Part shown: one piece after another, positions 34,401 to 62,726 of the stretch
How the letters are laid out: every line of letters starts with the position of its first letter
Numbering within the stretch: the stretch's first letter is position 1
NCBI RefSeq assembly: GCF_006345805.1
Contig: NC_043007.1
Location: 59,024,001-59,088,000, forward strand
Direction of reading: 5' to 3'
Origin: Octopus sinensis
Taxonomy: Eukaryota
Length of the DNA stretch: 64,000 nucleotides
Notes under the pieces: generated by a model
Told to the model about the DNA's origin: nothing
Database searches by the model: none
What the model saw: the letters and a program-made list of their open reading frames with translations, nothing else
Translations under genes and position numbers: made by a program

Positions 34401-37400
34401 AAAGTTAACCCTTTATCATTCAGATTAATCTGTCAAAATGTAAGACTTATTTATTTATATTGTTTTTCAGTTAACCCTTTAGCATTGAAACTGGACATAT
34501 CAGACCAAAATATTATCTGTGTTTTATGCTCAAACTGGTCAGGTCCTGCCTTTCACACTTACCCTACAATGTCAGTGTAAAATAAACAATCATATCATTG
34601 AGATCTCAAATGCATGCTTAATTTAAAAAATGTGAATAAATAGGCATTACATTTGGCAGAGAAATCTGAATGCTGAAGTATTAATCATGCATTATTTAAT
34701 AGTTTTGAGATTTTAATGGTGTGATAGTTTATTTTTACAATGACATTGTAGGATAAGTGTAAGAGGACAAATCTGGCTAGTTTGCACATAACTGATAGAA
34801 TATTTCAGCCCCATATGGCCAGTTAAAAAACTAAAGGGTTAAAGTATACTTTTCAGGAATATGTTCTGTGTCAAAAGCAAGATATAAACCATCAACAATT
34901 TGGCTGTGGGCCAGCAACCTAAAGCAAATTGTCACCTTTATATTTTACTTGAAACATCAAAAAGTAATAATAATAATAATAGTTTCTAATTTAGGTGCCA
35001 GGCCAGCGTTTGAAGGGAGGAGATCAATCAATATCATTGATCCCTGCACTTGACTCATACTTACTTTATTGACCCCAGAGAGATGCAACGAAAAATTGAT
35101 CTCCACAGGATTTGAACTTGGACACATGTGGCAAGGTATTTTTTCCAGAGATCCAACAATAATAATCACCCTGCTGTTTTACATGAAGTTAAAATAGTAA
35201 TAATACAGTATATGACTGATACATATCAATCCTGGAGACATGAAATATTATAAAACATTCTATATATTTATATATTTAAAGAGAGAGAGAGGGGGAGGTA
35301 ATAAGAGAAGAAGGAGAGGCAGACAGAGATAATAAAATATATGTATACATAAATAAAATTCACACAAAAAATACATACCAAAATTCTCCATCATCATTGA
35401 AGACTAGTCCTAATTTTTCCCTCTCATCGCTAGGAATACTGTTCCATTCAACAGACCTACAGAATTTGAAAATAAACACATTGTAATCTGGAAGTCAAAA
35501 TAAATTTTCAAAGGAAAGATGATATAACAATAAATATACTAATGAAAATAACGATATGTTTAACTAAAAACAAAAAATTAAAGGAAATTAAAATAAGAAA
35601 AGAAAATGTCAAATTTGAATTTATTCAAGATTACCTTTCATTCCACGGTCCATTCCAGGCAATATGTTCACCCCAAGGGTTTCGAATCCTTATCAGAGTG
35701 ACTGAGCGATTTCCTTGATCCGAGGGCAGTAAAAGCTGCAATGGAAAACAGCGAATATGCATAACTATTTACAAGAAAGAGACAATATGGTTACATGCAT
35801 ATGCACATATGCAGTAACAAAAAATATACATTACAAATGTACAAACTTCTCTACTAGTGGAGGCACATAGCCTAGAGGTAGGGGCTATTGCACTTGCACT
35901 CACAAGAATGCGATTTTGATTCTCAGACCAGGAGGTGTGTTGAGTTCTTAAGTAAAATGCTTCATTTCATGTTGCTCCTGTCCACTCAGTTGTAAATAGG
36001 TAAACTTACAACAGACTGGCATTCCATTCAGGGGTAATATTGTCCTGTCCACTAGCCAGCAGGGGAGCATCATCTAAAAGCTAAAACAATGCGAGGAGGT
36101 GCATTGCAATCAATGGTGTATAACACCATCTAATAGTCTGGTCAATACAATGATATATATAACGGTAGGGTTGTGAGGTTTCTTTAGTCCTATCCATCAC
36201 TATGTATTGTGGTTAACAACAGAAGAGCATCCAGCTGTAGAATCTAAGCTTAATGAGCACCAGTCAATAACAAAAATGACTCAGACTACTTAACCTATGA
36301 TAGAATGAAAAAAAGATATCAAATTATGATGATGTTGATGCTAGTGTCATGTAAAAATCTCCCAGTACACTGTAAAGTAGTTGGCATTAGGAAGAGTATT
36401 CAGCTATAGAAGCATTGCCAAAACAGACAACAAAACTTGAGTAGCTCCTGTCAGATTGTCCAACCCATGCCAGCATAGAAAACAGATGTATGATGATGAT
36501 GTGTGTTCGTGTATGTCCATTCACATAGGAAATTACTAAATAAAATATTAAGTTTCTGAAATTTATCTGAAAACCAAAAATCCAAATTAAAATATTACCT
36601 GCCGTAAATCAGTGATGTTATAAATATGACCTGACAACAAACCATTTGGAAGTTCACACTGTTTTTCATCCAGTGACAATGACTGAAAGATCAAAATGAA
36701 AAGAGAATAGATAAATCTAAAATGGTGTGAATTCAACCACAATTGCTCACACGCACACTACCAGTCATTAGAAAATTAGACAAAATATTTTGTGGTATTT
36801 GTTCCAACTCTCTATACTTGGATTCAAAATCTACCAAAGTCAACTCAAGAGTTTTATCTTTCCGAATATTGATGGAAAAGTACCAGTCCAAGGCAGTGAA
36901 TTGAAGGAGCTGTAAAAACATCTCACTGAATGCCTTATACTATTTGTTCTGACTGTGCATCCTGAATTCAAATCCTGCCCTGGAATACTTGGATGGTAGA
37001 CTTAAATTGTCACCTGGCTGATATTTTTGAGAGGTATTAGCAGAGTGCAAGCAGTCAGGCTAGGTTTTGGTTTGAGGATATCTCCCTGCCCACCCCCCAG
37101 CCTTCGATGTACTGTAATTGGTCAGAGGTACTGTCTTCCTCCTGACTAAAAAACAAAAAATTTTAAAAAACATGAGTACAGGGTATGAATAATATCACAA
37201 TGGTTGTGAATTTACACAAGAATTCAAATCTAACCTTTGTTGTATATTAACAATGTAAATTTATTGCCCCTAAACACGGTCAGTTACTGAAGCCTGCTCG
37301 CCTTGACAACATATCTGAAGAGTCAAGATATGATTCAGCTGATATCATTTACTTTCAAACTGACTCACATTGCAATCTAGATTCTAACATACCAGTTTGC

Positions 37401-40400
37401 ATCTGTTGTGGAGTATTAATTTCCTAAGAAATAAAGACTACAGACCTTTTAGTCCACATTTCAAAGAATGGTTGAGAGTATAACAGATGCACAGAAACTC
37501 ATTCAATGGCTCAGACTCAGTTATGAACAAAAAGAAAAAAAATCCTGCTTTAATGACGAAGAGATTTAATAATACTAAATCAAGTCCATTGCTTTAATCA
37601 GTTGGCTCTGAAGACCAGATCCACTTCAATTTGCATTGTGTATTTTGTCCCAAGTTTTGACTGATAGATCTAATTAAAGTTACCTCCCTTGTTTCCTCTC
37701 CGTCGACTTAAGCAATCGTAGAAGGAATTTTTGTCAACTATTTGTTTGGATAATCTCAGTTGATTAAAGTTTCTTCTAACTCTGTTTTAGATGTGTGAGC
37801 CCCTCTCCACATTAACAATATATATATATATATATATATATAAAGATCCACTTTGGTCATGAATGACCATGGGATTGCACCTAGAAAGTTATCCTGAGAC
37901 ACAAGTCCAGGCAAGGTTGTTTTTATCAAAGATCAGCAGTCGCCAATGCATACCAGCCTTCCCTCTCCATGCCACTGATGTTATCCAAGAGAAAGGTAAA
38001 GGCTGATACAGCTTGGCACCAGTGATGTTGCAACTCATTTCTACAGATGAGTGAACTGGAGCAACATAAAATAAAGTGTCTTGCTCAAGAACACAACACA
38101 GTCCAGTCTGGGAATCAAACCACTGAGATGTATGGCCTAGTGGTTAGGGTGTTGCACTCATGAGCACAAGAACATAGTTTCAATTTCTGGACAGAGCATT
38201 GTGTTCTTGAGCAAAATACTTCATTTGCTCCAGTCCACTCAACTATAAATGAGTTACCCTGCAATGGACTGACATCCTGTTTAAAGGGAATACCATGATC
38301 CTGGTCACTTATATGCTATAGGTCTACCTGCCAAGCCAGCTAGGTGGCATCATTTGAAAGCTCCAACATTGTGAGGAAGTGCATTGTAACTAGTGGTGTT
38401 TAACAATTTTAAGAGATCATAAAATGAATACGAAAAATTCCATTTGTAAATAACTATAAATTCATCAGCAATATTTCTCTTCTCCACAAGCCATCAAGAT
38501 GGCAGAATCATTAGCATGCAGGGTGAAAAAGCTTAGCGGCATTTCATTAGTCTTTATGTTCTGAGTCCAAATTCCAAGTAAGTTGATTTTTGCCTTTCAT
38601 CCTTACCAACTCCAGTCAAACCGTCCAACCCAAGCCAGCATGGAAAACATGTTAAATGATGATGATAATGATGATGGCAATGATGATGATCCCTTCTTGG
38701 GAAATATAATCTTGTGATATTTACTTACATTTATGCCACAAGCCACAATAGAATATCTATCGAGAGCTTTAAAGAGAATATTAATGATGTTTTCTGGAAC
38801 ATTTGCATTGGCTCCATGAAGCTTGTAGCTTTCTATTAGTCCACCAGTTAAATCAGCAAGGACATCTTCAAAAACATTCACTTTGAGAGCTTCATAGGAT
38901 CCATACATTCTTTAGTGAAATCAAATTTTCAAAAAATAGTGGAAAGAAACAAAATAGGGGAAAAAAGAAAAGAAAAAAAAGTAAATAATAAATTTACAAA
39001 AAGGAAGGAAATAAAACAAAAGATAAGGAAAATAAATTATGTTTTCTTCGATAATTGCTAAAAATTGAAGAACCAAGTGGTGGTTTGGGTTAGCGAGAAT
39101 CATTAAAATAACCAATATATTAAAACATTTTAAAAAATATTTTGGGTTACAAAGGAATTGCTTTTTGGCACAGGCTTTTGTTTGCAGGGTTTAGAGAGAG
39201 AAAGGGTTATGCCAATGCAGTTTGCAAGGTTTCTGAAACTGTTGGTACAAAAGAGCAAGAAGCTATGACCAATCAGGTACAGCCTATCCCACAAGCTTCC
39301 ACCCACACAATTTCAGCCACAGGTTTTTTTTAGTTAACTCAAGGTCATAGGACAAAACAGTTGCCCTGGGTCAAATATAGAACAAAATTGTGAAGACAAC
39401 TTCTTAACTCCACAGCAATGCAGGTACCCACAGTGACAAATTTGGTGAGGAGGAATTATGGTCAACTGAATCTTCCCTTGGTTATTAGTGATATTTGTTT
39501 TATAAATTGTGGAGCTAACTTCTTAGTTTAAAACCCAGAAGGAAGAAAAATCAGAGTTAAACACAGTAGGGTATGATCTTAGATTGTAGGATTTTTAGTT
39601 TTACTGATGACACGATAACTTCTCTAATGACAGACCCATGATAAAATACACTCAGTACACTCTGTAAAGTGATTGGTGATAGGAAGAGCATCAAGCTGTA
39701 GAATCCAGGTTGAAAGTCATCATTGTCATCATCATAATCATTTAATGTCCGTCTTCCATGCTGGCATGGGTTGGATAGTTTGACAGGAGCCAGCCAGGCT
39801 ACTGTATCTGTTTTCGCATGGTTTTTACAACTGGATGCCCTTCATAACACCAACCACTTTGTAGAATGGATTGAGTGCTTTTTACATGGCACCAGCACAA
39901 GCAAGGTCAGCTTTGGCATGGTTTTTACAGCTGGATGCCATTCCAAATATCCACTTCACAGTGTGGACTTGATGCTTTTTATGTGGCACCAGCACCAGCA
40001 GGGTCACCAAGTAACTTGCAAGGCAAGGAATTTTGAGAGGGGAGGGTGCATTAAAGGTGATGATAGGTTAGAGTGTGACAAAGAGACAGAGAGGCAGAAA
40101 CAGGTGTCTTGCTATAGAGGAGGTACATGGTTACCTGGCAGAGAGAGAGATGTATAAGCAAGACCCAGTCCTGTGACCTGTCTAGAAGGGCAGTAACTGT
40201 GAACAAGGACTTGGATCGTGACAACTTGTCCACTCCATACCAGCAGGGAAAGTGAAAGTAAAATGATGATGGTTGATAAGGTACACAACCATTTCTGTAA
40301 CTCCAACTGTTAGAAATAGCAGCTAAATCTCAGTCAAATCATACTTCTACTTTAGAAATGGAGAATGTAGTATTAAATATACTACAATAAAAAGGATAGG

Positions 40401-43400
40401 ATTGTCATGGCAAGCACAACAATCATTAGTCTGCTCAATCAGGATTGATTTGGGCTTTAATCAAAACTAAATAACAGAAAATGAATGTAAACCTTAATAG
40501 GAGTTAAAAATAAGGATAAAAAAAGAAAAAGAAAATGAAGGGAATGGAATGGAATCATAAAAAAGGGACTATGTTGGTTAAATATTAACAAAATACTCAA
40601 GGAGAATAGGAGGAGGAAAGAGAAAAGTAGAGACAGAGAGGGGGGAGTGAGCAAAGAAAATCCAGCAGGCAGAAGAAAGGTGAAAGACAAAGGAGGAGTG
40701 ACAAGAAAAAGAGACGAAGAAATATAGGAAATAAAAAGGAAATTTGAGGAGCAAAAGAATAACAGAGAAAAGCAACAAATAGGTAAGGGAATCAAATGAA
40801 CAAAAATGAATCACTTTCTCTCTTTCTCTCTCACACACACACACACACGCATCATTTTGACAAGAAAGAAGCTAACAGTTCTTCTAAAGATTCAGCTTAT
40901 GTAGCCTCCATCAGACAGTTCAATGTAAAAATAAAATAAATATCTTACTCTACTGAAAGATATTGAATGATCCTTCAATTTAATGTTTGTTTTTATATAT
41001 AGGTCTACATAAAATGAAATGCTAAGATATATATATATACACACACAAGGTAAGTTGGAAGAATTGTTTGCATGCTGGACAAAGTGCTTAGCAGCATTTT
41101 GTCCATCTTTATATCCTGAGTTTAAATTCCAATGAGGTTGACTTTGCCCTTCATCCTTTCAAAGTCAATGTAATCAACTAGCCCCCTTCACCAAAATTTC
41201 AGGCCTTGCATCTATATTAGAAAGGAATATATGTGTATCATTTAATATACGTAATTACAAAAGAGCTTCTAATAGTTTCATGCTTTTAGGATACGTTAAG
41301 TCGACAGATTTATATAACATGCCATGTATCTCCAAGTGTTCTGGTTTTTAAAAACATCTAACATGAACTGAGCCTGAAAGATTGCTTGGAGATACAATGC
41401 ACAGAAGCAGACCCAAGGTGGGGCCTGAGGGGTGTGTGCCCCTCTCAAGAAAAGAAGTGTGCCTTCTAAATAATGTTATTACGCCCTTTTCTCATGGAAT
41501 TGTATTCCCTTTTGACCTTGTGGTCTTCCTTTGAAAAATTCCTGGGACCACGCCTGATGCATGTTATATAATCTGCCAATTTAATGTATCTTAAAAGCAT
41601 GAAACTACTTGTAGCTTTTTTGTAATTGTGTGGATTAAATGATATTTATCTCTCACTGGCCTGTGTACTTTTTTTGTTGATCTTACCTATACTGGAACTG
41701 TAAACTGTGTGTATGAGGTTATGTGTGTGCATGTGCGTGGAGGTATGTGTCTGTGTACGTGTAAATGTAAAATAAATGGATTTACCACAACCAACTCATT
41801 GAATTATGTATCTGCTTATTGAATTGTAACTGGTTCAGTATTCTACAAACACATACCTTTGACCCATTAGCATTCAAACTGGCCATATCTGGCCCAAATA
41901 TTCCACCTATTTTATGTTCAAACCAGTCAGATCAAGCCTCTCACACCTACCCTACAATGTCATTGTGAAAATAAACAATCACATCATGGAAATCTCAATA
42001 CTACAAGATAATGCAGGATTAATTCAATACAATGTGAGTAAATAAGCTTTACATTTGGGAGTATAATCTGATTGCTAAAGGGTTAATGTAATCCCCAAAT
42101 AGAATCACATTGCACAGCATGTGACAAGGTTAAGCCTTTCAGAATTACAGGTAAAATCCATCTGACTGGCTTCCACTCACTGAACTTCAGACAGGTTTAT
42201 ATAACATGTCATGTTTCTCCAAGTGTTCTGGTTTTTACATACATCTAACATTCTAACATGAACTGAGCCTGAAAGATTGCACAGAGGCAGACCCAAGGTG
42301 GGGCCTGAGGGGTACGCACATACACATTTGTCCAAGGTGATGGACTGGCAGAATAGCACAGCATTAGGTATGATACCTGGTGGTATCTGTTTTGGAATTT
42401 GGAGTTTAACTCTTTAGTATTCAGATTATTTTGTCAAATGTATTTATTGTGATTTAGTGGTTAGGATTCCTGGCTTTTCACCCAGGTGGCCCGGGTTCAA
42501 TTCCCAGCACGGGAACATAAATTTTTCACATTCAGAAGGGCATCCAGCCATAGAAACCATGCCACAACAGACAATTGGAGTCTGGTCAGCTCCTGTCAAA
42601 CCATCCAATCCATGCCAGCATGGAAAACAGATGTTAAACGATGATGATGAAGATTGTTTTGAATTAATCATGTATTATCTCATAGCTTCAAGATTTTGAT
42701 GATGTGACTGTTTATTTTTTAGAATGACATTATAGGGTAGTTGTGAGAGGCCAAATCTAACCATTTTGAATACAAAATGGGTTGGCTATTTGGGCCAGAT
42801 ATGGCTGGTTTAAATGCTAAATGATTAAATCCCACCTTTTATCACCAGAGAAGAAAAGAAATCTAGTAAAAACGGTGACAAACTTGAGAAGTCCTTAAAC
42901 AAGTGTCCATGTAAGTCAGCTAATCACTGTTCATATCAGCTGATCAGTTGGTAGGAGAGGACAGAAAGAGACTTCAAATCCTGTATATTCAAGGAAGGAG
43001 TAGTAAACTGTGCTGTAAACTAATTAGTGTTGTGTTACTTCTCAGTCTCAAGTTCAAATCCTTCTCTGTACAAAAAGCTTATCCAGGATAATAGTTCTCA
43101 AAACCAGTTAATACGAAGAGATCTAAGATAAATTCCATCATGGGAGTTACGTACAAGTGTCTCTTTGGAGAAAAATCTTGTCCAAAGTTCAATCCCTGTT
43201 GAAATGTTTCCATTGGTTAACTGGAACATCAATGAAAGCTCCATCTTTGTAATGTGAGCTAATTTGGTAAATGTGGGTTGATTCTTCTTCAAGTTAATGG
43301 TTAATGAACGATGGCCAAATATGGGAGCTGGCATGACTTGGTGGTTAAGAGGTTTGCTTTGCAACCACATCATTTTAGGTTCAATCCTACAGACTGGTAT

Positions 43401-45787
43401 ACTAGGTAAGTAGTGTATTCTACCATAACCTTAGATTGATTAATGCCTTCTTAGTGAAATTTAGTACAGGGAAACTATGTAGAAGCCCATTGTGTGTGCT
43501 AGTGTGTTTGCATATATATCTTTTGTCAATGTATATGTGTGAAAGACAGACACTTCAGTGAGAAAATAAATGAGTAATTAAATGAAAATATTGCAGTATT
43601 TAATCTGGCCAAGTTGTTCAGACACTCCCTTGTTCCACTTACCATCAGAAATGTCAAGTTGTAATAGTTGCATCGTGAACATTTGTATCCTATTGCTCAC
43701 AAAATGCATGATATAATAGAAATAATCAAAAGTGTGAGACAAGCACTAAACAGGAATTGAACTTGCAGCTTGTCTTAGGAAGCAGTTACCATTATTCTAT
43801 AACAAGTTGTAATGCCTCCATAAATAACTCGCTTAATACCCATCACTCACAAATATCACACCTGTAGTTTAGCTGCAACCTATAATTCAAGCATGATCTG
43901 GTGCTAAACAACAACAATTATGGTCTAGTTATGTACTGTTGACTCAAAAGAAATTAAAAGACTAAAATAAAGAAGATCAAAACGAAATTCTTACTTGGCA
44001 TAAGCCTTTTCCAGAAGAGCTGGCCAAAATTCATTACTTTTGCTGGAATGTAGAAAGCAGTACTGTCCTTCATAGGTGGGTAAATAGTCATCTACAACAA
44101 TCTCTACCCAGTTACCACTGTGCCAGAAGTTGAAGTAAAATGCACCACAGTAATCATTGACATGGAAACTTTGGTTAAGTGGAATAACACGATGGAAGAG
44201 AGTTGAACATCCAGGTGTGGCTAGACATGCTATGGCAGCCAAAAGCCAGCTGTCTCCTGCATTTGAAAAAACAAAAAGATGATGATAATGTTTGTTACAA
44301 TCAGGATAAGTTAATTTTTTTTGTCTTTCTAGTGGTTACTTATTGTTTTGGTGTGTTTCTTTGAACTTATTTGTTAAAGATACTTATTTATATTCATGGA
44401 AAATTTTCTGTCTATCAAGTTTATTTTTATGAGATTCATTAAAGCAGATATCCTGTTTGTCAAAAGAAGCAAGTTTTATTTACACTTCGTTTCTTATGCT
44501 ACTTTTGTCATCAGATTTACTTCTCAAAACATACAGCAAGGTTGTTTTTACAGTTTGATGATCATCCACTTTGTATGTTGTTTTTATGGTTAATTGGGGT
44601 TTTAGGGTAATTTTATGGTACAGTGGTTTTATTACATTTTTGTTCATGTGATCTTTTTACCTATGAAGTATATTCCTGTGTGTGTTGTGTGTGTGTGAGA
44701 TTCTGTTGGTTTGAATTAGAAATGAGTGTATCTGGTTTTTTTTTTCTTTCTGTGTGAAGTGCCATTACTATTTTGTCTGTCTCTTTGAATTTTCATTGTC
44801 CACACAGCTGTTGCTGCATTGTCCATTGTCTATCTTGTTTGTAGTTCAGATTATTTTTTGAAGATGAATTTATTTTGGTGCCTGCAACACAAGATGTGCC
44901 ATTTATCCTGTTTAGCAATGGTATGTTATGTATGGCTATGTTATATATATGGCTGGTTTTGGTGTCGTGTAAGTTACACACACATGACAATCAGAGATCT
45001 ACCAGTTTCTTAGACAATCTCTTTAGTTAAATGGGTGGCTAGCACAACACCAAAACAACCCAAAAAATTCAAGAATCAATTCTGTACTCACCCAACTGTC
45101 CTTGCTGAACATCAAAGCCACCAATACCATCAACAAAAAACTTTGGTTGTATGCCAGTTAACTTACTTAAAGCCTAAAAATAATGGAAGTGTTAGAATTA
45201 GAACAATGAGCTGATTTCAAATGTTAATAAGTTGTTTTTTTTTATTTAACAGATTAATAAAAGTTTCAGGGCAGGGAGATGATCACACAGCTCTAATTCA
45301 GATGGTTATGTATGAATACTGCCCGTAGCTGATTTATTTCCTTGTTAGCCATTTATGTTGTTGGTGATGTTTAGACTCCAGGTCAGTTCTGGGCTTAAAC
45401 AACAACAAACAAGCAGGACTATGATTAAAGGCATTCTAGCTGTGGCCATCCTGTCTTTTTTCAGACATATATTAATATCTAAGTCTACATGTATTCAGTG
45501 TTCTTTCTTTTTTTATATTTTAAATGTTAGTGTGTAGTTTGAGGGAGATTCAGTTACAATTTCTAAGAGGTCAAATGACCACATAGAGGTTTCTTCACTG
45601 CATTGGTAATACATTTATTTCATCAGCAGGAGAATAGTGTCCAAGACTAAATAAGCAAATAAAACTTTAAAGAATATCTAATTTGAAAAAAAATGGCTGG
45701 GAATAAAATCAGTAATAGGTCATCCTGCAAATAGTACATGGTTCAAAGTCTGTTAGTGAACTTGTTCTTTATCTCTAGTTAGTCGAA

Positions 45788-45851
<64 letters not shown>

Positions 45852-48800
45852 CAATGACTAGTGTAGCAGCATTATAATCAACTGCTACAAGAATGAAGGA
45901 GATGTCTTAGATAGAAGTAATTAGAGAAGTATTAAATTGCTGGACCATGTCATGAAAGTTACAGAAGCTAGCTGAATGGCTGGTGAGAGCTGTTCATGTC
46001 ATGTACCAGGGTGCTGGCAGTAAAGTGAGAGTTAGCAATGAGTACAACAAATTTAGTGTGCCAGTAGGAATTCAACCCAGGGGCTGGTTTTCATTACTCT
46101 CGTTTTTATCCTAGCCCTTCAGGCCATAACAGAGGATTTTAAGACTGGAGGTCATGAGAACACTTCAATGCTGATGACCTTGTTCTTGTAACTGAAGCTG
46201 TAAAAGAATTAGGAAAGAAATACCAAATGTGGAAGGGAAACCTGGAATCAAAGGGCCTTAAAATTAACTTAGCAATAACCAATGTTTTCGTAAGCAGGAA
46301 AACAGAGTGGATGCTACTTCCTTCAAGAAAATGAATGTTTAAATGTAAAGAGGGTTTAGGCAGAGATTCTGTATGATGTACTGAGTACAAATTATGGACT
46401 CATAAGAGATGCAATGGTATCACAGGAAGATTAACAAAGAGAGTAGATTTTCTATGTGGCAGATGAACAGGCGCAATAAATACTGAAAACCCATAGAAAA
46501 TGGAGTTTTTCAAATGTCCAGGAGGTTGACAAGAGGTAGTAGATAGCTTTTATTATCTAGGTGACTTAACAGTGGAGGAGGAGGTTTCAAAAGTATAACT
46601 GCTAAAATAAGAACAGGATGGAGAAAGTTTAGAGAACTATTATCTCTGTTGGTAGCAAAAGGTCTCTCACTCAGATTGTATGATGCCTGTGCAATACTAC
46701 ATGGTAGTGAAATGTGAGCCATGAATGCAGATGATATGCAAATACTAGAAAGAAAGCTAGCATGCTCAACATCAGTGCGCATATATAACAGAGTAAATGC
46801 ATTGAGAGAAAAGCAGAGCACAAGAGGTATCAGATGTAGTGTGCGAGAGACTGTGCTGGTAAAGTTATGTGATGCATGTGGATGAGGATAGCTGCATAAT
46901 GGATGAAGACAGCTGTGGATTGCTAAATGAGGATGGGATCTAAGGAAAAAGGTGACCTAGTAATATGTGGGACAAAGTAGTGAAGACCAACCTCAGAATA
47001 TCGAACATCATGGAAGAGATGATAAATGACTGAAATGACTGGTGACTTTTCTGTGCTTGAGTGTCCATCTTAGCAAAAACAAGGTCATCATCATTGTTTA
47101 ATGTCCGTTCCCCATGCTAGCATGGGTTGGACGGTTCAACAGGGGTCTGGAAGGCCAGGAGGCTGCACCAGGCTCCAGTCTGATATGGCAGTGTTTCTAC
47201 AGCTGGATGCCCTTCTTAATGCCAACCACTCCATGAGTGTAGTGGGTACTTTTTACGTGCCATCAGCACAGGGGCCAGGGGAGGCTGGCAAACGGCCACA
47301 ATCAGTTGGTGCTTTTACATGTCACCGACATGGATGCCAGTCAGGTGGCGCTGTCATCTGCCATGTTCAGACAGTGCTTTTTACGTGTCACCGGCATGGG
47401 TATCTTAACTACAATTTCCATTTGATTTTTATTTTGATGTATCAACAATATCCATTCGATTTTTATTTTGATGTATCAACAATATCCATTCGATTTTTAT
47501 TTTGATGTTGATGTACTTGACACAATAGGTTTCCTCAAGCACCGGAGGCCGTCCTGCAAGCCATGAACTCACTTCATTTGTTGGGTCTTCAAAGTCACAG
47601 CATATCTCCAGAGGTCTTTCGTCATAGCCTCTGTGAGGCCCAACGTACGAAAGTCATGCTTGATCACTTTGTCCCATGTCTTCCTGGGTCTACCTCTACC
47701 CCGGATTCCTTCAACAGTTTGGGAGTGACACTTCATCATATATCTCTCCTCATCCATCCGTAGTACACGACCATACCAACGCAAACGTCTCTTTTGCACA
47801 CTGCATCTGATGCTTCTTATGTCCAACATTTCTCTCAGGGCACTTATACTCTGTCGTGCATGGACAGACATTGCACATCCAGCAGATCATGCTAGCTTCA
47901 TTTCTTTCGAGCCTACGCAAGTCCTCTGCAGTCACAGCCCATGTTTCACTGCCATGAAGCATAGCAGTTTGCACACATGCATCGTACAATCTACCTTTCA
48001 CTCTGAGCGAGAGGCCCTTTGTCACCAGTAGGGTAAGAAGCTTTCTAAACTTTGCCCAGGCTATTCTTATTCTAGTGGTAACACTCTATGAGCATCCATC
48101 CCCGCTACTAACTTGGTCACCTAGGTAGCGGAAACTATCAACTACTTCTAGTTTCTCCCCCAGGAGTGTAATGGAATCTGTTTTCCGAGTATCAATGGTG
48201 TCTATTGCCCTTGTGCATCTGCTGCACACGAAAGCTATCTTCTCAGTTAATTTTCCTTTTGATGTTGCTGCACCTCTTATGTGTCCATAGCTTACACTGG
48301 GTACATCTTATGGAGTTTCTACCTACACTTTTTCTACAGATCAAGCAGGGTCACCTACCTGAAGGGATGTGTGTGGTGAGTTAGCCTTCCTACTTACTAG
48401 AACTTTGGTCTTTGCTCTAAGGCCTTTTGAATCTAAACCTAGCTTCCACACACGAAATTTCTTCTCTAGTTCCGGTAGTGATTCTGCTACGAGGGCTAAG
48501 TCATCAGCATAGAGGAGATCCCAGGGGCAACCAGTCTTGAATTCCTCTGTTATTGCCAGGAGGACTATGATGAATAAAAGGGGACTGAGGGCTGAACCTT
48601 GGTGGACCCCTACTTCTACCCAGAATTCTTCGCTATACTCGTTGCCAATCCTAACTTTGCTAATGGCCTCTTTGTATAGGGCCTGTACAACCCTAATTAA
48701 CCATTCGTCAATCTCCAGTTTCCGCATCGCCCACCAGATAAGGGATCGGGGGGAACCTGCATATTGTTTCATCTGTTTCTGCACTTAAGCCGTCATAGTG

Positions 48801-51196
48801 ACCTTCTTGTACCTTGAAGGTATGTCTTGACACCTCATCACCTCCACCTTGGGCAGCAATGTATCTCCTCTGCAGCAAGAAGCCTGTTCCTTATCCTTCT
48901 GTCATACTTTAACCTTTCAACACCTGGTACAAAACTTGTGAGTCACTTGGTGACCTCACTAGTAGTGCTAGTAACATGAAAAAGCATCCAGTACTTTCTA
49001 TAAAGTGGTTGATGATAGGAAGGGTATCCAACCTCACCAGTACCCCACCTTCCCGCACAAGGGGAAAAAACCCAAAATACTGAATACTGCTTTTGTTTGA
49101 AATAAACAAAAAGTGGAGCAATGGAGTATCCATCATTAATGTAATATTGACTTCAAATTTTAGCACAAGGCCAGCAATTTCAGAGGATGGGCTAAGTTGA
49201 TTACACCCCACCCAGTACTCATTGATCCTGAAAGGATGAAAGGCAAAGCCAGTCTCAGTGGAATTTGAACTCAGAATATAATGATGGGCGTAATGCCACC
49301 TAGCATTTTGCCTGGTGCACTTAATAATTCTGCCACTCGCCACCTTCATTGTAAGTGTAATATCTTTTGCTACTCTAGGCACAGGGCTCAAAGTTTTTGG
49401 TGAGGGAGCCAGTCGCAACTGGTACTTAATTTATCAACCCGGAAAGGATGAAAAGCAAAGTCAACCTTGGCAGAATTTGAACTCAGAACGTAATGGCAGA
49501 TGAAATGTCACTAAGCATTTCATCCGGCATGCTAACGCATCTGCCGTTCCAAGTTCAATCCTGTGCAACAGTGACTAAAGGGAGAGCACTTATAGTGATT
49601 TGTGTTTACAACTAATTTTACTGAAAAAAAAAAAATTGTGCGTGTATTACAAGTAATTAACAACGAATTGGTCTCAGATTTTAGCATAAGGCCAGCAATT
49701 TCGGGGGAGTGGGGTAAGTCGATTACATCAACCCTCAGTGTTCAACTGGTATTTGTTTTATTGACCCAAAAGGATGAAAGGCAAAATCGATTCTTGTGGC
49801 ATTTAAACTCAGAATTTCACTAAATAGTTTTTCCAATGCAATAACGATTCTGCCAGCTCAGCGCCTAAATAACTTACCCTCACATTACTGTATATTATGA
49901 TTGTTATTTGATATATATCTCTTTTATTGTTTTTTTTTTTAAATTTGGGATCAAATCTATTTTCTTTCAGTTTCTTTGTATTCTTTTATTTGTTTCAGTC
50001 ATTTGACTGCAGCCATGCTGGAGCACTGCCTTTTAGTCAAAGATATCGACCCCAGTACTTATTCTTTGTAACCTAGTACTTATTCTATCAGTTTCTTTTG
50101 CTGAACCGCTAAATTACAGAGATGTAAACACACCAACATCGGTTGTCAAGTAATTGTGGTGGGGACAAAAACATACACATAAGTATTTACATACATTCAT
50201 ATGTGTGTGTGCATGTGTATACACGATGGGTTTCTTTTCTGTTTCGAACTGCCAAATCCACTCACAAGGCTATGGTCGGCCTGAGGCTATAGTAGAAAAT
50301 ATCTGTCCAAGGTGCATTGAAGTTGGACTAAACCCGGAACCATGTTGTTGGGAAACAAGCTTCTTACCACACAGCCACGCCTGTGAATGTATGTAGGTAT
50401 TTCAATACATACTGCCAACCCTTAAACCTGATACAAAGGTTTTCATCATTATCATAATTTAAAATCTACTTTTCAATGCTTGGATGGATTGAACAGAGTT
50501 CATTTGAGGCAGATTTTCTACAGATGGATGGCCTTTCTATCACCCATTCCCAGCTGTTTCCAAGCAAGGTAATATTTCCCCCATGGCCAGGCATATTCTC
50601 ATAGAATACTAGATATGAATGACACCACTTGTATGACAGTGACACTCATTTACAACAATCACATGATGTTAAATGAAAGACACACAGACACACTAGGCTT
50701 TTTTCAGTTTCCATCTACCAACTCCACTTGCAAGGGTTTGGTTGGCCAAGTGCTATAAGAGTAGATACTTGCTCAAGGTGCCACACAGTTAGATTGAACC
50801 TGGAACCATGTAGTTGGAAAGCAAATGTTTTACCACATAACCATGCCTGCACCTATATCTTGTTTATATAATAATCTGTCCAAGTAACTAAAAATAAAAT
50901 TGTTTCTAATTTAGGCACAAAACTAGCAATGAAAGGCAAAATTGATCATGGCGGGATTTTGACACAATGTAAAAAGCCAGAACATATACCACAAGGCAGT
51001 TTGTTTCACTAATATTGCTGTTGTTTAGCACCAAGTCATCCCTGATTGACCAGATGTATGATTAAAGGAATTCCAACTGTGAGAATTCTATCTTTCTAGA
51101 AATCACCTTTCTTTTACTTTTTGAGAGTGTAAGGTGTGATTAAAGGGAGATTTGATTGCTTTTACAAGCAGTTGAAGTAGGGTGAAAAAAGAAAGG

Positions 51197-51273
<77 letters not shown>

Positions 51274-54200
51274 AAGACAGACAGAGAAAGAACAGAAAAA
51301 TGTAGCACTATCTGCAAAGTGGCCTTGCTTAATGTGTAGAAATTCAATATTATATTATGTACTTAGAGTAAGCAATAGGTGCAGTGAAGGAATCTGACAG
51401 ACTGAAACTAAATCACTGGATGCAGCAAATGCATAGGAATGGTTAGTAGCAGATACTGCAAGCAGAAGCTGCATTGATTACTTGTCTATGTCCCCTTCTT
51501 TAACCTTGTAACATTTAACCCTGTTAAATGTAATGCTCATTTTCACATTGTTTTGAATTAATCATACATAATCTCGTAGCTTCAACATTTCAATGATGTG
51601 ATTGTTTATATTTAGAATGACCATGTAGGGTTGGTGTGGGAGGCTGGATCTATCCAATTTGAAAATAAGACAGGCAGAATATCTGTTTCAGACATTGGAT
51701 TGTAACCAGGCTGGAGCATTTCTTTCATGCGTTTTTAGTTAAACATATCACACCGCAATTCTTAATTCAGTCTGCTACTTATTTTATTGAAGTCTATTTG
51801 TTGAACCACTAAGTTATAAGATGTGAAAGGACACAACATAAACAAAAACACTGATTTTTAGACATAAACACACACACACACATAAATCAGATCAAAGGGG
51901 ATTTAGACAGGTGAGAGGTTACCTCAGTCAGCACTCTTGCAAATACTAAGAGAGTGCATAAAAATGAACAGTTTCCATAAGGGAAACCATTTCATACAGC
52001 CTAAAATTCGAAGGAGGATTTGTTACTCACAGAGTATGCTATAATTAGTACAAGAATGGAGGTGCTGGTAATGTAATACTAACATCCCAATTCTTGGACT
52101 TACACACACATTTGTGCATTCCGACAGTTTTCATTTAGTAAATTCCTCTCATGAGATATTGGTCAGCCTGAAGTTATAGTAAGATGATTTAATTAACACA
52201 GGGGATTTCTAATGAAAGTTCAATCACTAAGCTTTTGTTTTGTTTTTGTTTTTTTAGTTTTAAATCATCCCTGACTAAGCAGAACTATAATCTATTGCAT
52301 TCCAGATGTGACCTCTTGTTTTTTTTTTTTATCAAAATTATTCAGTGAATCTTTTCTTTCTTAAAATAGTAGTGTGTCTTCTGAAAGCCATTTCTAGCAT
52401 ATAAAATGACCATGCAGTATTTCCTTTGTTGGCTCAACTCATCATCATCTAGCTTTCCATGTTAGCATGGGTTGGACAATTTGACTGAGGGCTGGCGAAC
52501 CAGATGGCTGCACAAGGCTCCAATCTGATCTGGCAGAGTTTCTACAGCTGGATGCCCTTCATAACGCCAACCACTCCAAGACTGTAGTGGGTGCTTTTAC
52601 GTGCCATCAGCACAAGGGCCAGTCTGGCAGTACTGGCAATGGCCACGCTCAAATGGTGTTTTTTACATGCCACCTGCACAGGAGCCAGTCCAGTGGCACT
52701 GGCAACGACCTCACTCGAATATTTTTTTATGTGCCACCAGCACAAGTGCCAGTAAGGCGACGCTGGTAGTGATCACGCCTGAATGATGCTTTTTACATGC
52801 CACCAGCATGGAAGCCAGTTAGCTGCTCTAGCAATATTCACACTTGGATGGTACTCTTAGCACTCCACTAGCATGGATGCCAGTTGTCGAATTTGATTTC
52901 GATTTCACTTGCCTCAACAGGTCTTTGCAAGCAGAGTTCAGTGCCCAATGAAGGAAAGGTATGCATAAGTGGGCTGGTTACACCCCTGGCACAGGCCACG
53001 AGGTTACGGTCTCACTTGGCTTCCTGGTTCTTAAGCACAGCGTATTTCCAAAGGTCTCAGTCACTAGTCATTGCCTCTAGTTTTGTTAAAACTAGGACGG
53101 AAAATGTTCAGTGGCTTGTTTCATCTGTCGGTAAGAAAGTGTTTCTCAGTTTGTGACAGACAGACTGTATGAAGTATATGTACAATGATGTTGTACAGTA
53201 GGGGTATATCATAAGCAATATCAATTTATAAAATAGTGTCCATGCTAACAGCAGCTGTTGAGACAGAGGCAATAAGAGGACGAGCTTCAAAAAAGTGTGG
53301 GCAGATCTAAAAATGCTGCATAGTACAAAAAAGATCACACATGATCTTTACAGCAGTGAAAATTTTGGGAACACTTGAGATATACTGAAAACCTATCCAA
53401 GAAGATGGGTGGATATTTAAAAACAGTTATAAATTAAAATAACTAGAAATAGAAAATATGTGGAAGAGATAGACCCATGAAGACCTGGGATGAGGTGGTG
53501 AAGCATGACCTTCGAACATTGGGCCTCACCGAAGCAATGACTAGTGACCGGGACCTTTGGAAATACGCTGTGCTTGAGAAGACTCGGCAAGCTCAAGTGA
53601 GACCATAACCTTGTGGCCAATTCCAGGGGTGTAACCAGCCCACTTATGCGTACCTTTCTTTCATTGGACACTAAGCACTGCTTGTGAAGACCTGTTGAGG
53701 CAAGTGAAATCGAAATCAAATTCGATGACTGGCATCCATGCGCTAAGAGTACCATACGAGCATGATCGTTGCATGAGCAACAGGCTGGCCTCCATTTGAG
53801 TGTGATTCTTACCTGCGTTGCCTTACTGGCACTTGTGCTGGTGGCACGTGAAAAAACATTCGAGCAAGGTCGTTGCCAGTGCCGCTGGACTGGCTCCTGT
53901 GCAGGTGGCCCATAAAAAGCACCATTTGAGCGTGGCCGTTGCCAGTACCACCTGACTGGCCCTCGTGCCAGTGGCATGTAAAAGCACCCACTATACTCTC
54001 GGAGTGGTTGGCATTAGGAAGGGCATCCAGCTGTAGAAACTCTGCCAGATCAGATTGGAGTCTGGTGCAGCCATCTAGTTCGCCAGACCTCAGTCAAATC
54101 GTCCAACCCATGCTAGCATGGAAAGTGAACTTTAAATGATGATGATGATAGACTTGACAGGGACATTGTTTGAAAGACCCTGTTGTGTGCATAAACATTA

Positions 54201-56841
54201 TGCTTTCAGAACCTCAGAGACACTGCACTAGCATAGCTGGAATGGTTCTTTTCAAGCACTGTGTATCATCAATCACCTCTGTCCTTTGTTATTTCCTCCA
54301 TGAGGTTAAACATCCTAAGATTGGCCTTCACTTCATCATTCCCCATCTTCCTTTGTCTTCCTCATTCACAGGTTTTCTCTGCTGTAATTATCACTTCTTT
54401 ATTCTTTTAGTATTTAAACTGGCCATATCCAGCCTAAATGTTCTATCTGTTTTATGATTAAACTGGCCATGTCTGGCCTCTCACACTTACCCTTGAACAT
54501 CATTCTAAAAATAAATAATCACATCATCCAAATCTCAGTTACAAGACATTACATAATTAATTCAAAACAATGTGAATAAAAGGCATTAATTATGATAGTA
54601 ATCTGAATACTAAAGGATTATACAACTATCCTCATCCATCACATTACATTCTCAAACCAATTTTGTCTACTCTCTTGCACATTACACCTGATTCCTCTTA
54701 TGCTCAGTTTTCCTCTCAGCACATTTATACTCTGTTGTTCATGCATGCTGACATTGCCAGTGAAGCATGCTAGCTTAGTTTCTTTCTAGTCTCCACAGGT
54801 CCTCTGTATTCCAGACCTACATCTCACAACCATGTAGCACTGCTGTTTATACACAAGTATCATGCCTGTCTGCCTTTCAAATCTTTAGCTATCAAAAGAG
54901 ATAATACTTCCCTGAACTATCTTCAGCCTGTTCTAACTCTGGCTAGTGCACTTTCAGAACTTCCTCCTCAATTACCAATTAAGTCACCTAGATATGAAGC
55001 TATCAGCTAATTCGAGAAATCCTCCTGCGCATTTGAGAGCATCTATTTCCTATACACTGCTGGTGTTTATTGCTCCTACACATCTACCACAACTAAAGTT
55101 TATTTTCTTGCTATGGTTCCACTGCACCTTAAGTATGTCCATAGTTTGCATTGGATACATTGTATGAAATTTCTACCAACTCCTTTCCTACATAGAGAGC
55201 TTGGCCATTTTCCTGATAGTAGTAGGGTTCTGTGTTTTCCTATTTACTAATTCTCGAGTCTTTGCTAAGTTCATTTTCAGGGTTTTTAATTCCAGGTTTT
55301 GTGTCCGTGTCTGGAATTTCAGTTCTCAGAATAAGAGTTTCCACAAGCTTCCAGTTTTCTTCCTATTTATTATTTTAAACTTTGCTAAATTCACTTTGAG
55401 TCTTCACGATTCTAGGATTTGTTTCTGCTGGAATTGGAAACTATATCGTAAACTTCTCTGATATGGTTTAGAGGATTATAATGAACAGAGAGTGCTGAGA
55501 TTGACCCCCTGCTGTACTGCACCTTCACACTGAATTCATCCTTATACTCATTACTAACTCACCTTGCTGATTCTGATTCTGTACATGGATTGTAACAGCT
55601 CTGAAATGCCCACACAGCAGAGGATCCCTGTCAAACACCTTCTCTAGATCTACAAATGTTTTGTATGGAGGCTTATTCCTGGCAACATATGTCTCCTGCA
55701 ACAGCCTCATTAATAGAATAGCCTAACTGCATCACATCTGTTAATTCTCTCTCTAATCTATTATGCTGTACCTCTTTCTGTAACCTTCATAAACTGATCT
55801 AACAGTTTAATGCCTCAGTTGTTTCCTCTATAATTTCCTATCACTAATGCATCTTCTTTGTCCTTTTAGTAGTTGACAATGATGCCACTATGCATCTGAT
55901 TTACTATGTGAGTTATGATTTTGGCAGATATTTTCAGCATTTCAGCAGTGATTCCTAATGGATGAGGATGCCTTCCTATCCTTCATATCTTTAATCTCTC
56001 TATCCATCATAATAGTACTTTCATGTCTCTTTTTTTGTCATTCTTTGTACAAGCAAGACTACCATTATCATTCCATACACTCTTCACCCCAACAATGTCA
56101 GGATTTTCTCTCATTGCTGAGCAACCTGAAATATCTCATGCCTTTCTCTGATCCACACATCTAAGAACATTGGGCAAAGTTTTTACTCTCAGCTTCTCCT
56201 ATTGCTAGATTTACCTGATATCTAGCTTCTCTTCTTACAATTTGCTATTGCTCTTTGCTATCCATCCTTTCAATTAGTTTTTAAGTCTGTCTCTTAGCCT
56301 TTATGGCTCTCTCTATAGAGCTATTCCAGCATCCTCTGAACCTCTTTTTAGTAAGATCCGTGGCCCAATCTGATCTCCTTAATAGATTATTCCAAAGAAG
56401 CTCCCAGTTGTTCACTCTCTACATTATTATTTTCTATCTCCTCTATCTTGTCTTATGCTAATACTACTTTAAACATACACACATGTACATGTATAACCTA
56501 CATACAATATGACCAGGCAAGTAAAATGAGATCACAGCTGTAGCCTATACTAGTGTCGCATAACCATCCCCCACCTCGGCTGGCTCCTGTGCTGGTAGCA
56601 TGTAAAAAGCACCATCCGAACGTGGCCGATGCCAGTGCCGCCTGGCTGGCTCCCGTGCCATGGCATGTAAAAAGCACCCACTGCACTCTCGGGGTGGTTG
56701 GTTTTAGGTAGGGTATCCAGCTGTAGACACATTGTCAGATCAGATTGGAGCCTGGTGCAGCCTCCTGGTTTGCCAGTCCTCAGTCAAACCGTCAACCCTT
56801 GCCAATATGGAAAACGGACGTTAAACGATGATGATGATGAT

Positions 56842-56885
<44 letters not shown>

Positions 56886-57720
56886 TACTATCTTCTTGAA
56901 GTTGCTACAATTGAGATGTGTTTCCCCACACTACACTAGACATTTCTGTCCTATATTATCTTTGGCAGAGCCTCAATTTCATGTTGTGTGACTGCTAATA
57001 ACATCAATGTAATCGAATTGTCTACATCCTTTATTGGAGTACAGAAATCTCCATAATAACGAAAACTTACTCCACCGTTGAACAGTAGAGATGGGTGAAA
57101 CGTCCGTAAACCTTCTCTTTCGTTTTGCACTCATACCGTAAGAAGCCTGAACATGCCACAGCTGATACCCCCACCACAGTAAATAGCCATAGACGACACC
57201 TTAACTCGGTAAATAGCCATAACTGACTCCCTAACTTACTAAATAGACATAGTCGGCACCCCTTCTAATCGGCACATGTATAACAGTGTGTTGCAGATGG
57301 AAAAGTCATGATTTCTTTTAGTAAATAAAATACATTTTTCTGCTTTGAAAAGTTAACATTTATTTACATACTTTGGCATTCTTTCGATATAACTCGACAA
57401 AATCAAAACACTTTACTTCGGGTATTTCCGTGGAAGCAAATGACAGTTCGATTCTGCTTGGAAATTTGCAGATTTTACATATACACATGAAACAGGTAAG
57501 AACAAATATGCAACGCTTTTTTTCTTCTAGTTTAAAATAAGACATTGCTGACATAATTTCGTTATATCTATATTCCACAACCCACAGAAATACCCGAAGT
57601 GAAATGTTTTGATTTTGTCGAGTTATATCGAAGGAATGCCCATACTTTAAACATACACATAGATATGTGTTTGTGTGTGTATGTGTATACACATACACGG
57701 GCGCACACATGTGTACATAT

Positions 57721-57761
<41 letters not shown>

Positions 57762-59710: not shown

Positions 59711-60736
59711 GCAGCTCAACGAGTTGAGCCAAAAATAAATAAAAGAAAAAAATGTTTAAAGCGGTAGACAGGGAAAGCGAGGTATGCAAAACAGCAAGGT
59801 TAAGCCTACCTATTTAATGTCATATAATCCTCAATGCATATACAACACTAAAGCTATTTGCTACTTACGCATTTTACTGTGTTATCTATATACTATCAAT
59901 AGACTTTACTTTCACTTAAAAGGGTAAAAATCCATGAATTCATATTACAACGTGCAAGTTACTATTTTTTTTTATTTGATGATCTAATATCAGTTTCTAT
60001 TTAATAAGTGTGTTAGTGTACTTGTAAATGTCTAAGTACTAATGTGTGTGTGTGTGTGCATGCGTGCATATGTTTGTGTAAAGTGGGCGGGTGGGTGTGT
60101 CCTTACCCTTATGTTCTACCCCTCCAAAGTTAGAATTATTGATCATTCCATCATTTTAAAGTGTTCTATTATTAAAAAGTATAGCTGTTCGTTCAAAACA
60201 GAAAGCACTGTACACTGTTATATCAAGATTGGGAAAAGTTGGAACACGTCATTTGTCAAAGAAAAATGCTGTGATGAAATGCCCATAGATGGCATGCTTT
60301 GATTAATGTCATTGTGAACTTATGTCTCCTCACGCAAGTGTAAACAAAAACTTTACATGTGATATTTTAGCTTTCACCTGTTTTTTTTTTATAGCGCGCG
60401 CACGCGCACACACTTGCGCGCGTGAGCGCACACACACACACCTACACATCTATAAATACAAACACATACACATATATTATGTATGTGAGTCGGGAGGGAG
60501 AAAGAAAGAAATGTGTAGATGCATAAGAATATCTCCTTGTTTAACATTTTCAATTTTCTAGACGGATAAACTACTCTGAAGAATTTGCAGAGAAATATAT
60601 AATAAAAATTACATCTGCTTCTCTGTTAATAGAGCATTAACCCTTACTTTATTACTTGAATATACTTTACTGCTCTATACTTTAGGTGCTCCGTTTTTGG
60701 ATATATGATACATTGGCAATGTGTGTGTGTCGATAA

Positions 60737-60740
<4 letters not shown>

Positions 60741-60797
<57 letters not shown>
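60741..60797. repeat. (TA)n microsatellite
   Basis: Direct reading. Confidence 0.95.
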
Positions 60798-60800
<3 letters not shown>

Positions 60801-60866
60801 GGTCCCGGGTTGATTCGGGGTTAACCACAGTAAATAAGGTACTCAATACATAGCAGAGTAAAATTA

Positions 60867-62505: not shown

Positions 62506-62671
62506 AGGTGTAGGAGTGGTTGTGTGGTAAGTAGTTTGCTTACCAACCACATGGTTCTGGGTTCAGTCCCACTGCGTGGATCCTTGGGCAAGTGTCTTCT
62601 ACTATAGCCTCAGGCTGACCAAAGTCTTGTGAGCGGATTTGGTAGACGGAAACTGAAAGAAGGGCGTCGTA

Positions 62672-62726
<55 letters not shown>

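Follow-up and report, generated by a model that had tools for sequence, protein, structure and literature searches.

Here we describe a calpain gene on the minus strand of a 64,000-nucleotide stretch of the Octopus sinensis genome (contig NC_043007.1, positions 59,024,001 to 59,088,000; referred to below as the window, meaning the whole of this stretch), in which a serine, Ser179, stands in place of the nucleophilic cysteine of the protease. With a probability of roughly 0.7, we interpret its product as a conserved non-proteolytic classical calpain, the cephalopod orthologue of the molluscan family C calpains, that has been kept for a regulatory or scaffold role. Enzymes that have lost their activity but are kept by selection have repeatedly become regulators, and the octopus case looks clean: the gene is a single-copy orthologue, none of the octopod proteins retrieved being a duplicate of it, its nucleophile appears to have been lost once in a cephalopod ancestor, and purifying selection has since held it in place.

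The gene was rebuilt by hand through tblastn seeding followed by reading of the splice sites; a calpain-1-like guide sequence served as the tblastn seed only, and the final model was validated independently. It comprises 18 exons with GT-AG boundaries at all introns, and its 2331 nt encode 776 aa with a single terminal stop and zero frame lesions. The rebuilt protein is identical at 776/776 positions to RefSeq XP_029642848.1 ("calpain-A", Octopus sinensis), while O. vulgaris CAI9730197.1 ("calpain-9-like isoform X2") matches it at 775/776, the sole difference being A539T. An earlier note, prepared from the letters of this DNA, had proposed an intact 18-exon, 776-aa frame with the residue numbering Gln173, Ser179, His343 and Asn371; our independent rebuild agrees with it exactly, and the earlier model is also the public RefSeq model.

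At positions 44249-44251 the plus strand reads GCT, which is AGC (Ser179) on the minus strand. Joining the end of exon 2 (CAG TTG G, before the donor gtgagt) to the start of exon 3 (GA GAC AGC TGG, after the acceptor cag) yields QGQLG-D-S-W. Exon 3 has its best PDB matches in 1KXR and 1MDW, two calpain cores engineered from Cys to Ser, while its natural exon-level homologues read GDCW in 20/20 cases, so the AGC codon falls exactly at the calpain nucleophile. The homologue search with exon 3 alone returned only exon-sized fragments, all of them with Cys, and no orthologue was among them. The equivalent position (Cys115 of mu-calpain) is Cys in 108/108 Cys-bearing calpains of the site comparison described below and in 113/125 rows of a wider alignment; a one-base change, TGC to AGC, suffices for the replacement. 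A-to-I RNA editing cannot restore the cysteine, as an edited AGC would read GGC (Gly), and the mRNA contigs discussed below show AGC. The replacement of the calpain Cys claimed in the earlier note is thus upheld by codon, splice junction and alignment.

Gln173, His343 (in GHIYNIT) and Asn371 (in RNPWGE) are all present. The protein therefore lacks the Cys-His-Asn triad of a competent calpain, with Ser179 for Cys and with His343 and Asn371 kept, and it conforms to the definition of a dead calpain, in which at least one active-site residue is substituted in an otherwise intact molecule. Pfam finds a complete protease-core domain (Peptidase_C2, PF00648, residues 121-429, profile positions 1-297 of 297, E 2.8e-99) followed by Calpain_III (PF01067, residues 448-581, E 2e-34), together with EF-hand_1 and EF-hand_6 matches. 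Residues 99-773 align end to end with the large subunits of m- and mu-calpain (phmmer against PDB), and residues 609-773 with the penta-EF-hand (PEF) structures of calpains and of the small subunit, making this, on both domain counts, a classical calpain of peptidase family C2 with the architecture CysPc-C2L-PEF. In the AlphaFold model, residues 104-776 mostly reach a per-residue confidence score (pLDDT) of 80-95, and residues 1-103 stay below 35. The model superposes on m-calpain large subunits with a template-modelling (TM) score of 0.85, which indicates that the calpain fold is intact; it lies closer to the Ca2+-free than to the Ca2+-bound form of m-calpain, a resemblance that carries no functional conclusion. 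The loops of EF-hands 1-3 keep their consensus ligands in octopods and look Ca2+-competent, and the fifth EF-hand, the dimerisation hand, is present.

Orthology, expression and selection among cephalopods

The closest non-cephalopod proteins, at 44-52% identity, are "calpain-9-like" proteins of gastropods, bivalves, annelids and one nemertean. The nearest Aplysia proteins are, by accession, XP_012942074.1 (AplCCal5) and XP_005105754.2 (AplCCal6), both assigned to classical family C (Hastings et al. 2017, PMC5650170, Table 2), a family that contains AplCCal4-6 and is named after the catalytically dead Drosophila CalpC (PMC5650170). A neighbor-joining tree of 650 columns with 100 bootstrap replicates, from which Drosophila CalpC was left out, recovered a lophotrochozoan-plus-Priapulus clade with 100% support, a mollusc clade with 96% and a cephalopod clade with 100%. 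Its topology is that of the species tree, with gastropods, bivalves and cephalopods in separate subclades, and insect CalpA/B and Lingula calpain-A fall outside the mollusc clade that holds AplCCal5/6; the octopus protein thus groups with the family C calpains of Aplysia and not with family A or L. No Cys-bearing co-orthologue was found among the top homologue matches from four octopod proteomes. With a gene tree that follows the species tree, and without such a co-orthologue among these matches, the octopus gene is the cephalopod orthologue of a single molluscan family C calpain rather than an extra paralogue, and the earlier suggestion of a lineage-specific paralogue is not sustained.

Ser179 is also found in O. 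vulgaris, O. bimaculoides (98.6% identical) and Argonauta hians (88%), as well as in a second, distant cluster (P0034/P0157, 68% identical) that is known from Logan assemblies only. Since the contigs of this second lineage, of about 2.9 kb, contain a complete uninterrupted open reading frame (ORF), compared with an octopus gene spanning 44 kb, they represent spliced mRNA. P0157 was read on 24 contigs (31 blocks in the index), drawn from at least 24 RNA-seq-like runs in two or more series, and P0034 in a single run belonging to a third; the Ser codon is AGC in 11/11 of the second-lineage mRNA loci fetched. The second lineage is sister to the octopods with 100% bootstrap support and has the N-terminal extension in common with them, exon 1 being only 33% identical between the two; it is probably another cephalopod, a decapodiform. 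Its mRNAs fall into two variants (L001-L010 and L011), from different run series, that differ at 44/2346 positions of the coding sequence and by one codon indel and probably represent two closely related species or populations. A further homologue search with residues 101-352 found no additional cephalopod fragments or octopus transcripts.

Comparison of the octopus coding sequence with its second-lineage orthologue gave proportions of synonymous differences (pS) of 0.67-0.90, which is saturated, and of nonsynonymous differences (pN) of 0.15 for CysPc, 0.10 for C2L and 0.23 for PEF. The ratio of nonsynonymous to synonymous rates (dN/dS) is about 0.10 where computable; since saturation leaves the whole-gene dS not estimable, this value is approximate, applies to the core alone and is a kind of upper figure (about 0.1 or less). 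The folded protein is thus held by strong purifying selection, and its second-lineage orthologue is expressed as spliced mRNA, as is expected of a genuine pseudoprotease. These results bear on the prospect that Ser179 reflects an assembly error, a private single-nucleotide polymorphism or a young pseudogene, for which the earlier note had proposed looking at the codon in orthologues, at expression and at dN/dS. A single T-to-A change would be enough to produce the codon, and no other support for such an origin was found. The same Ser occurs in four octopod species, each assembled independently, and in the 11 mRNA contigs read for an orthologue that is 68% identical, with AGC and not TGC in each case; none of the 18 exons is damaged and their splice sites are canonical, the orthologue is expressed, and dN/dS lies far below 1. 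Because the Ser is shared between species, the mRNA reads AGC and dN/dS is low, we exclude artefact and decay for practical purposes.

Constraint is unevenly distributed over the protein. Between octopus and the second lineage, identity is highest in C2L (86%), followed by PC2 (77%), PC1 (74%) and PEF (65%), with CysPc as a whole at 75%. The ratio of CysPc to C2L identity is 0.87-0.91 in cephalopods compared with 0.94-1.26 in 15 comparison pairs, both members being Cys-bearing in 14 of them. Measured from the molluscan ancestor, the cephalopod path is 0.41-0.46, against 0.27-0.41 for most Cys-bearing orthologues; about 60% of it lies on the stem (0.27), while the crown branches are short (0.14-0.19). 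Such a stem-heavy path with a low crown rate fits a burst of change at the loss of catalysis, after which purifying selection would have resumed for a new role.

Catalytic cleft, calcium switch and proposed role

Further residues of the catalytic apparatus were located in an alignment of 119 calpains, from which tandem-fused fish gene models were left out, with the rat m-calpain core (1MDW sequence, P0175) as the numbering reference, and the substituted sites were compared with 108 Cys-bearing calpains. Five sites besides the nucleophile are changed in all cephalopods (mu-calpain equivalents in brackets). Residue 168 (Arg104) is Gly, or Asp in Argonauta, compared with Arg in 104/108 others; residue 275 (Gly208) is Asn in octopods and Cys in the second lineage, compared with Gly in 108/108; residue 274 (Gly207) is Val (Gly in 100/108), residue 344 (Ala273) is Ile (Ala in 107/108), and residue 332 (Glu261) is Gln or Lys (Glu in 101/108). 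Each lineage has in addition lost one ligand of Ca2+ site 2: residue 378 (Glu302; Glu in 107/108) is Ala in octopods only, and residue 385 (Asp309; Asp or Glu in 108/108) is Val in the second lineage only. Kept in cephalopods are Ca2+ site 1 (V163, G165, D170 and E252), Gln173, Trp180, Gly342, His343, Asn371, Trp373, Asp408 and Glu410, as well as the equivalents of mu-calpain Gly271 and Glu333. The core Ca2+ switch (site 1, site 2 and the Arg104-Glu333 pair) is therefore incomplete, with site 1 intact, Arg104 lost and one site-2 ligand lost per lineage; in mu-calpain this pair is reported to form a salt bridge that couples the two core Ca2+ sites (Moldoveanu et al. 2002). The earlier note had described Gln173, His343 and Asn371 as retained, which holds, but other parts of the catalytic apparatus have changed as well, the Arg104, Gly208, Ala273 and Glu261 equivalents being replaced and Ca2+ site 2 altered.

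The functional weight of these positions can be judged from the structural literature. Gly208, Gly271 and Ala273 of mu-calpain surround Cys115 in the cleft and touch calpastatin, and the core Ca2+ ligands are listed in the same source (PMC4057710), where Arg104Gly and Gly208Arg are equated with loss-of-function CAPN3 dystrophy mutations (PMC4057710). Across 149 near-invariant columns, cephalopods are changed at 8, of which 5 lie in the cleft or the Ca2+ switch; Cys-bearing control pairs show 0-6 such changes, mostly conservative, and other dead relatives 16-28. The cephalopod protein thus presents itself as a minimally degenerate dead calpain. We consider it very probably non-proteolytic, because Cys-to-Ser kills engineered calpains and because the Arg104, Gly208, Ala273 and Glu261 equivalents and a site-2 ligand have been lost. 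The Cys-to-Ser mutant of Aplysia CCal1 does not autolyse and has a dominant-negative effect in Aplysia neurons (PMC5650170), and the substitution is cited as the standard inactive calpain in PMC11387712.

A change of nucleophile rather than its loss would make Ser179, His343 and Asn371 a working serine-type triad, and the protein a hydrolase that is perhaps slower, resistant to oxidation or directed at a new substrate; sponge silicatein and other papain-fold proteins with a natural Ser would be its precedent. Every cephalopod sequence keeps Gln173, His343, Asn371, Trp180 and Trp373, the core evolves at a dN/dS of about 0.1, and the Gln-Ser-His-Asn (QSHN) pattern is the sole one of its kind among about 270 calpains surveyed; other dead calpains lose His or Gln as well, and the cephalopod protein is far less degenerate than its other dead relatives. 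Against this, engineered Cys-to-Ser calpains are inactive (PMC5650170; PMC11387712), two of the four lost cleft and switch residues (the Arg104, Gly208, Ala273 and Glu261 equivalents) match loss-of-function CAPN3 mutations, and retention of three residues is unremarkable at 68% overall identity (0.68 cubed is about 0.3). We therefore regard such a switch as improbable, and as slightly less probable still its stronger form, in which the changes in the cleft (Gly208 to Asn/Cys, Ala273 to Ile) and in the Ca2+ switch would be adaptations to a new substrate or chemistry rather than decay.

Two further proposals, both raised in the earlier note, accept a dead cleft and assign it a binding function. 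In the first, the protein would be a Ca2+-regulated substrate trap like C105S m-calpain, binding calpain substrates in its cleft in a Ca2+-dependent manner and shielding them from active calpains as a competitive dominant negative. The dominant-negative behaviour of Cys-to-Ser AplCCal1 in Aplysia neurons (PMC5650170) lends this some credit, as do the strong conservation of the core and the retention of Ca2+ site 1 and most of site 2. However, the peptide-backbone contacts are altered (Gly208 to Asn/Cys, Ala273 to Ile, Gly207 to Val) together with the switch Arg, so canonical Ca2+-triggered assembly of the cleft and peptide binding are doubtful; the Glu261 and site-2 changes point the same way, and C2L is more constrained than the core. 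We hold a trap to be unlikely, though less so than a new nucleophile. In the second, the protein would soak up the endogenous inhibitor calpastatin and thereby release active calpains. C105S m-calpain does bind calpastatin, and 3BOW and 3DF0 are among the structure matches, but two of the three cleft contacts for calpastatin subdomain B are replaced (Gly208 by Asn/Cys, Ala273 by Ile, with Gly271 kept), and calpastatin is absent from Drosophila and C. elegans (PMC3315469), leaving a sponge very improbable.

A conserved dead calpain with a regulatory or scaffold role is thus the reading we prefer, and the scaffold or regulator idea of the earlier note is the part of its proposal that we favour as plausible. 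Under this scheme, the nucleophile codon would have changed from TGC to AGC, by one base, on the cephalopod stem before octopods and the second lineage split, and the equivalents of Arg104, which reportedly couples the core Ca2+ sites, and of the cleft residues Gly208, Ala273 and Glu261 would have been replaced in the same period. Strong purifying selection on the whole folded protein would have followed, implying that it is functional, though not as a protease. With the calpain fold, a well-conserved C2L domain and the PEF domain kept, the protein may respond to Ca2+ and work as a binding, scaffold or regulatory subunit; its partner, joined by way of the fifth EF-hand, would plausibly be a second copy of itself or an active calpain. 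Regulation of active calpains as the mode of action is a speculative and tentative suggestion. There are precedents: CalpC binds CalpA/B, dead calpains of insects function in development (PMC11387712), and CAPN8/9 heterodimerise (PMC5650170; PMC11387712).

Several points weigh against this interpretation. The excess of lost invariant sites over the Cys-bearing control pairs is modest (8 versus 0-6). Gln173, His343, Asn371, Trp180, Trp373, Gly342 and most Ca2+ ligands are kept, and the core is 75% identical across a deep split; with degeneration this low (8 versus 16-28), the cleft could still be somewhat catalytic or ligand-binding. Membership of family C rests on the Aplysia accessions and on a neighbor-joining tree lacking Drosophila CalpC, and the published family C clade has a bootstrap of just 36% (PMC5650170).

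Exon coordinates and other features of the window

Coordinates of the exons, of selected codons and of the remaining features are collected in Table 1.

Table 1. Features of the calpain gene and its surroundings, in positions of the 64,000-nucleotide window.
Feature	Positions	Strand	Content
Whole coding span	15777..59567	-	ATG 59567-59565, stop 15779-15777; 44 kb; 18 exons, 776 aa
Exon 1	59121..59567	-	disordered N-terminal extension (aa 1-103) and start of protease core
Exon 2	45092..45173	-	Ca2+ site-1 V163, G165, D170; Gly168 codon 45119-45117; oxyanion Gln173 45104-45102
Exon 3	43995..44256	-	GDSWLLAA motif including Ser179
Ser179 codon AGC	44249..44251	-	position of calpain nucleophile Cys
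Exon 4	38729..38909	-	Val274-Asn275 (38881-38876), in calpains Gly-Gly (mu-calpain Gly207-Gly208)
Exon 5	36599..36682	-	Gln332, Gly342, catalytic His343 (36628-36626), Ile344 (36625-36623)
Exon 6	35635..35735	-	catalytic Asn371 (35681-35679), Trp373, Ala378 (35660-35658), Glu385
Exon 7	35379..35456	-	Ca2+ site-2 Asp408, Glu410
Exon 8	32649..32806	-	CysPc end, C2L start
Exon 9	32157..32317	-	C2L domain
Exon 10	30316..30527	-	C2L domain
Exon 11	29330..29435	-	linker and PEF domain start
Internal acceptor in exon 11	29402/29403	-	ccttcccttgtcag followed by C; in frame, 33 nt downstream
Exon 12	26848..26905	-	EF-hand 1
Exon 13	26253..26311	-	PEF
Exon 14	24216..24284	-	EF-hand 2 loop
Exon 15	23002..23080	-	EF-hand 3 loop; Pfam EF-hand_1 over 685-711, E 3e-9
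Exon 16	19471..19587	-	EF-hand 4 region; conserved Asp to Asn738
Exon 17	17960..18012	-	EF-hand 5 (dimerisation hand)
Exon 18	15777..15800	-	WLEKVLL and stop
Short ORF	10266..10340	-	KGSKVPEIIDLDKMSWCLVPSLSTF and stop
RVT_1 fragment	48344..48784	-	intron 1
RVT_1 fragment	24372..24845	+	intron 13
ORFs	47572..48085		intron 1 element, C-terminal part (resemblance)
Rfam tRNA match	42443..42515	+	intron 3; 30.4 bits, gathering threshold 29 bits
Dispersed repeat, copy	52485..52766	+	about 280 bp
Dispersed repeat, copy	53812..54093	-	about 280 bp
Dispersed repeat, other copies	near 6371, 25678, 39806, 47155, 56580, 61237
TA/CA-type microsatellites	2620..3137, 16350..16480, 57600..57800, 60700..60840, 62650..62800

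Exon 11 contains a second good in-frame acceptor, whose use could shorten the linker by 11 aa in an alternative isoform; other isoforms are annotated, since the O. vulgaris record bears the label "isoform X2". A stretch at 10340-10266 on the minus strand (IIDLDKMSWCLVPSLSTF and stop) was considered as the C-terminal exon and rejected, as the true exons 17 and 18 begin at 18012 and 15800 and identity to RefSeq confirms them. The short ORF there, which stands behind a strong polypyrimidine tract and resembles a calpain/PEF C-terminus, may be a chance occurrence or a relic exon.

Introns 1 and 13 hold RVT_1 fragments of retrotransposons of the long interspersed nuclear element (LINE) type, and the ORFs that resemble the C-terminal part of the intron 1 element have no Pfam match. 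The tRNA match in intron 3, which ARAGORN did not call, is probably a tRNA-derived short interspersed nuclear element (SINE) rather than a tRNA gene. The dispersed repeat occurs in at least 8 copies on both strands, in introns and flanks, and two of its copies, 89% identical to each other, lie about 1 kb apart in inverted orientation. In several frames the long microsatellites give rise to long ORFs that are spurious and abound in Y, I, C and H.

Comparison with known dead calpains

Dead calpains are already well known: 344 inactive calpains were catalogued in 2012, without the replacing residues (PMC3315469, Table S1), and insect cases are recurrent (PMC11387712). Our literature search found no paper on a cephalopod dead calpain, and public protein names give no hint of one; what is new here is the cephalopod case with its minimal Gln-Ser-His-Asn active site. 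In a survey of 149 cluster representatives from an exhaustive search, about 10 of some 139 diverse calpain representatives (about 7%) lack the nucleophile Cys, with Ser in three, Phe in three, Thr in two, and Ala and Asn in one each. One of them (P0242) reads Q-T-H-N, with Thr at the nucleophile position and His and Asn kept. Ser combined with kept Gln, His and Asn was seen in cephalopod proteins only, in two surveys, and more of the active site is kept here than in any other dead calpain surveyed. The statement of the earlier note that natural dead calpains use other substitutions is mostly correct.

Several parallels lie within family C itself. Drosophila CalpC is a classical CysPc-C2L-PEF calpain without catalytic competence, as the octopus protein very probably is too. 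CalpC is said to have lost all three triad residues, whereas in the octopus protein only the Cys is replaced. Catalytic residues have been lost repeatedly in family C (Drosophila, Daphnia, Branchiostoma), and its lophotrochozoan members are said to keep the triad (PMC5650170). The latter statement (PMC5650170) needs amending, with cephalopods, Biomphalaria and Paralvinella as exceptions. In the "calpain-9" of Biomphalaria glabrata and B. pfeifferi (P0056/P0193-P0196), Gln and Cys are both replaced by Phe, conserved in the two species; Paralvinella palmiformis KAK2162664.1 (P0072) reads P-Y-K-N at the Gln, Cys, His and Asn positions, and a Logan transcript (P0061) reads Q-S-Q-N, with His replaced by Gln. 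These proteins belong to the same well-supported clade as the cephalopod protein, with the nucleophile lost independently, and are changed at the same Ala273 and Glu302 equivalents. They are more degenerate, however, with 16-28 near-invariant changes compared with 8, and have lost Gln and/or His too. Cephalopods, along with Biomphalaria and Paralvinella, are thus further lineages whose family C calpains have abandoned catalysis, which strengthens the idea of an ancestral non-proteolytic role for this family.

Outside family C, mammalian CAPN6 differs in being a non-classical calpain without a PEF domain, of the subfamily CAPN5/6/TRA-3, and its nucleophile is reportedly replaced by Lys. It too is a natural, conserved and non-proteolytic calpain with a cellular function, the stabilisation of microtubules (PMC3315469). 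Dead insect calpains of the A/B type have been proposed as regulators of active calpains or as scaffolds (Rhodnius prolixus, PMC11387712). They are lineage-specific duplicates that have usually lost several triad residues and EF-hands, whereas the cephalopod protein is single-copy with its PEF domain intact. Natural Cys-to-Ser proteins of the papain fold that keep His and Asn exist elsewhere in clan CA, namely Plasmodium SERA5 and sponge silicatein; they belong to family C1 rather than C2 and have a different biology, and serve as an analogy only.

Engineered calpains offer a further parallel. The C105S, C115S and C129S calpains and the Cys-to-Ser form of CCal1 carry the identical substitution at the identical position, and these constructs fold and are proteolytically dead. 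They retain the remaining catalytic residues and Ca2+ switch, whereas the octopus protein is also changed at the Arg104, Gly207/208, Ala273 and Glu261 equivalents and at one site-2 ligand. When cephalopod neurobiology or muscle is studied, annotations such as "calpain-A" or "calpain-9-like" should not be taken to denote a working protease. The octopus protein is also a natural analogue of the Cys-to-Ser dominant-negative construct from work on Aplysia plasticity.

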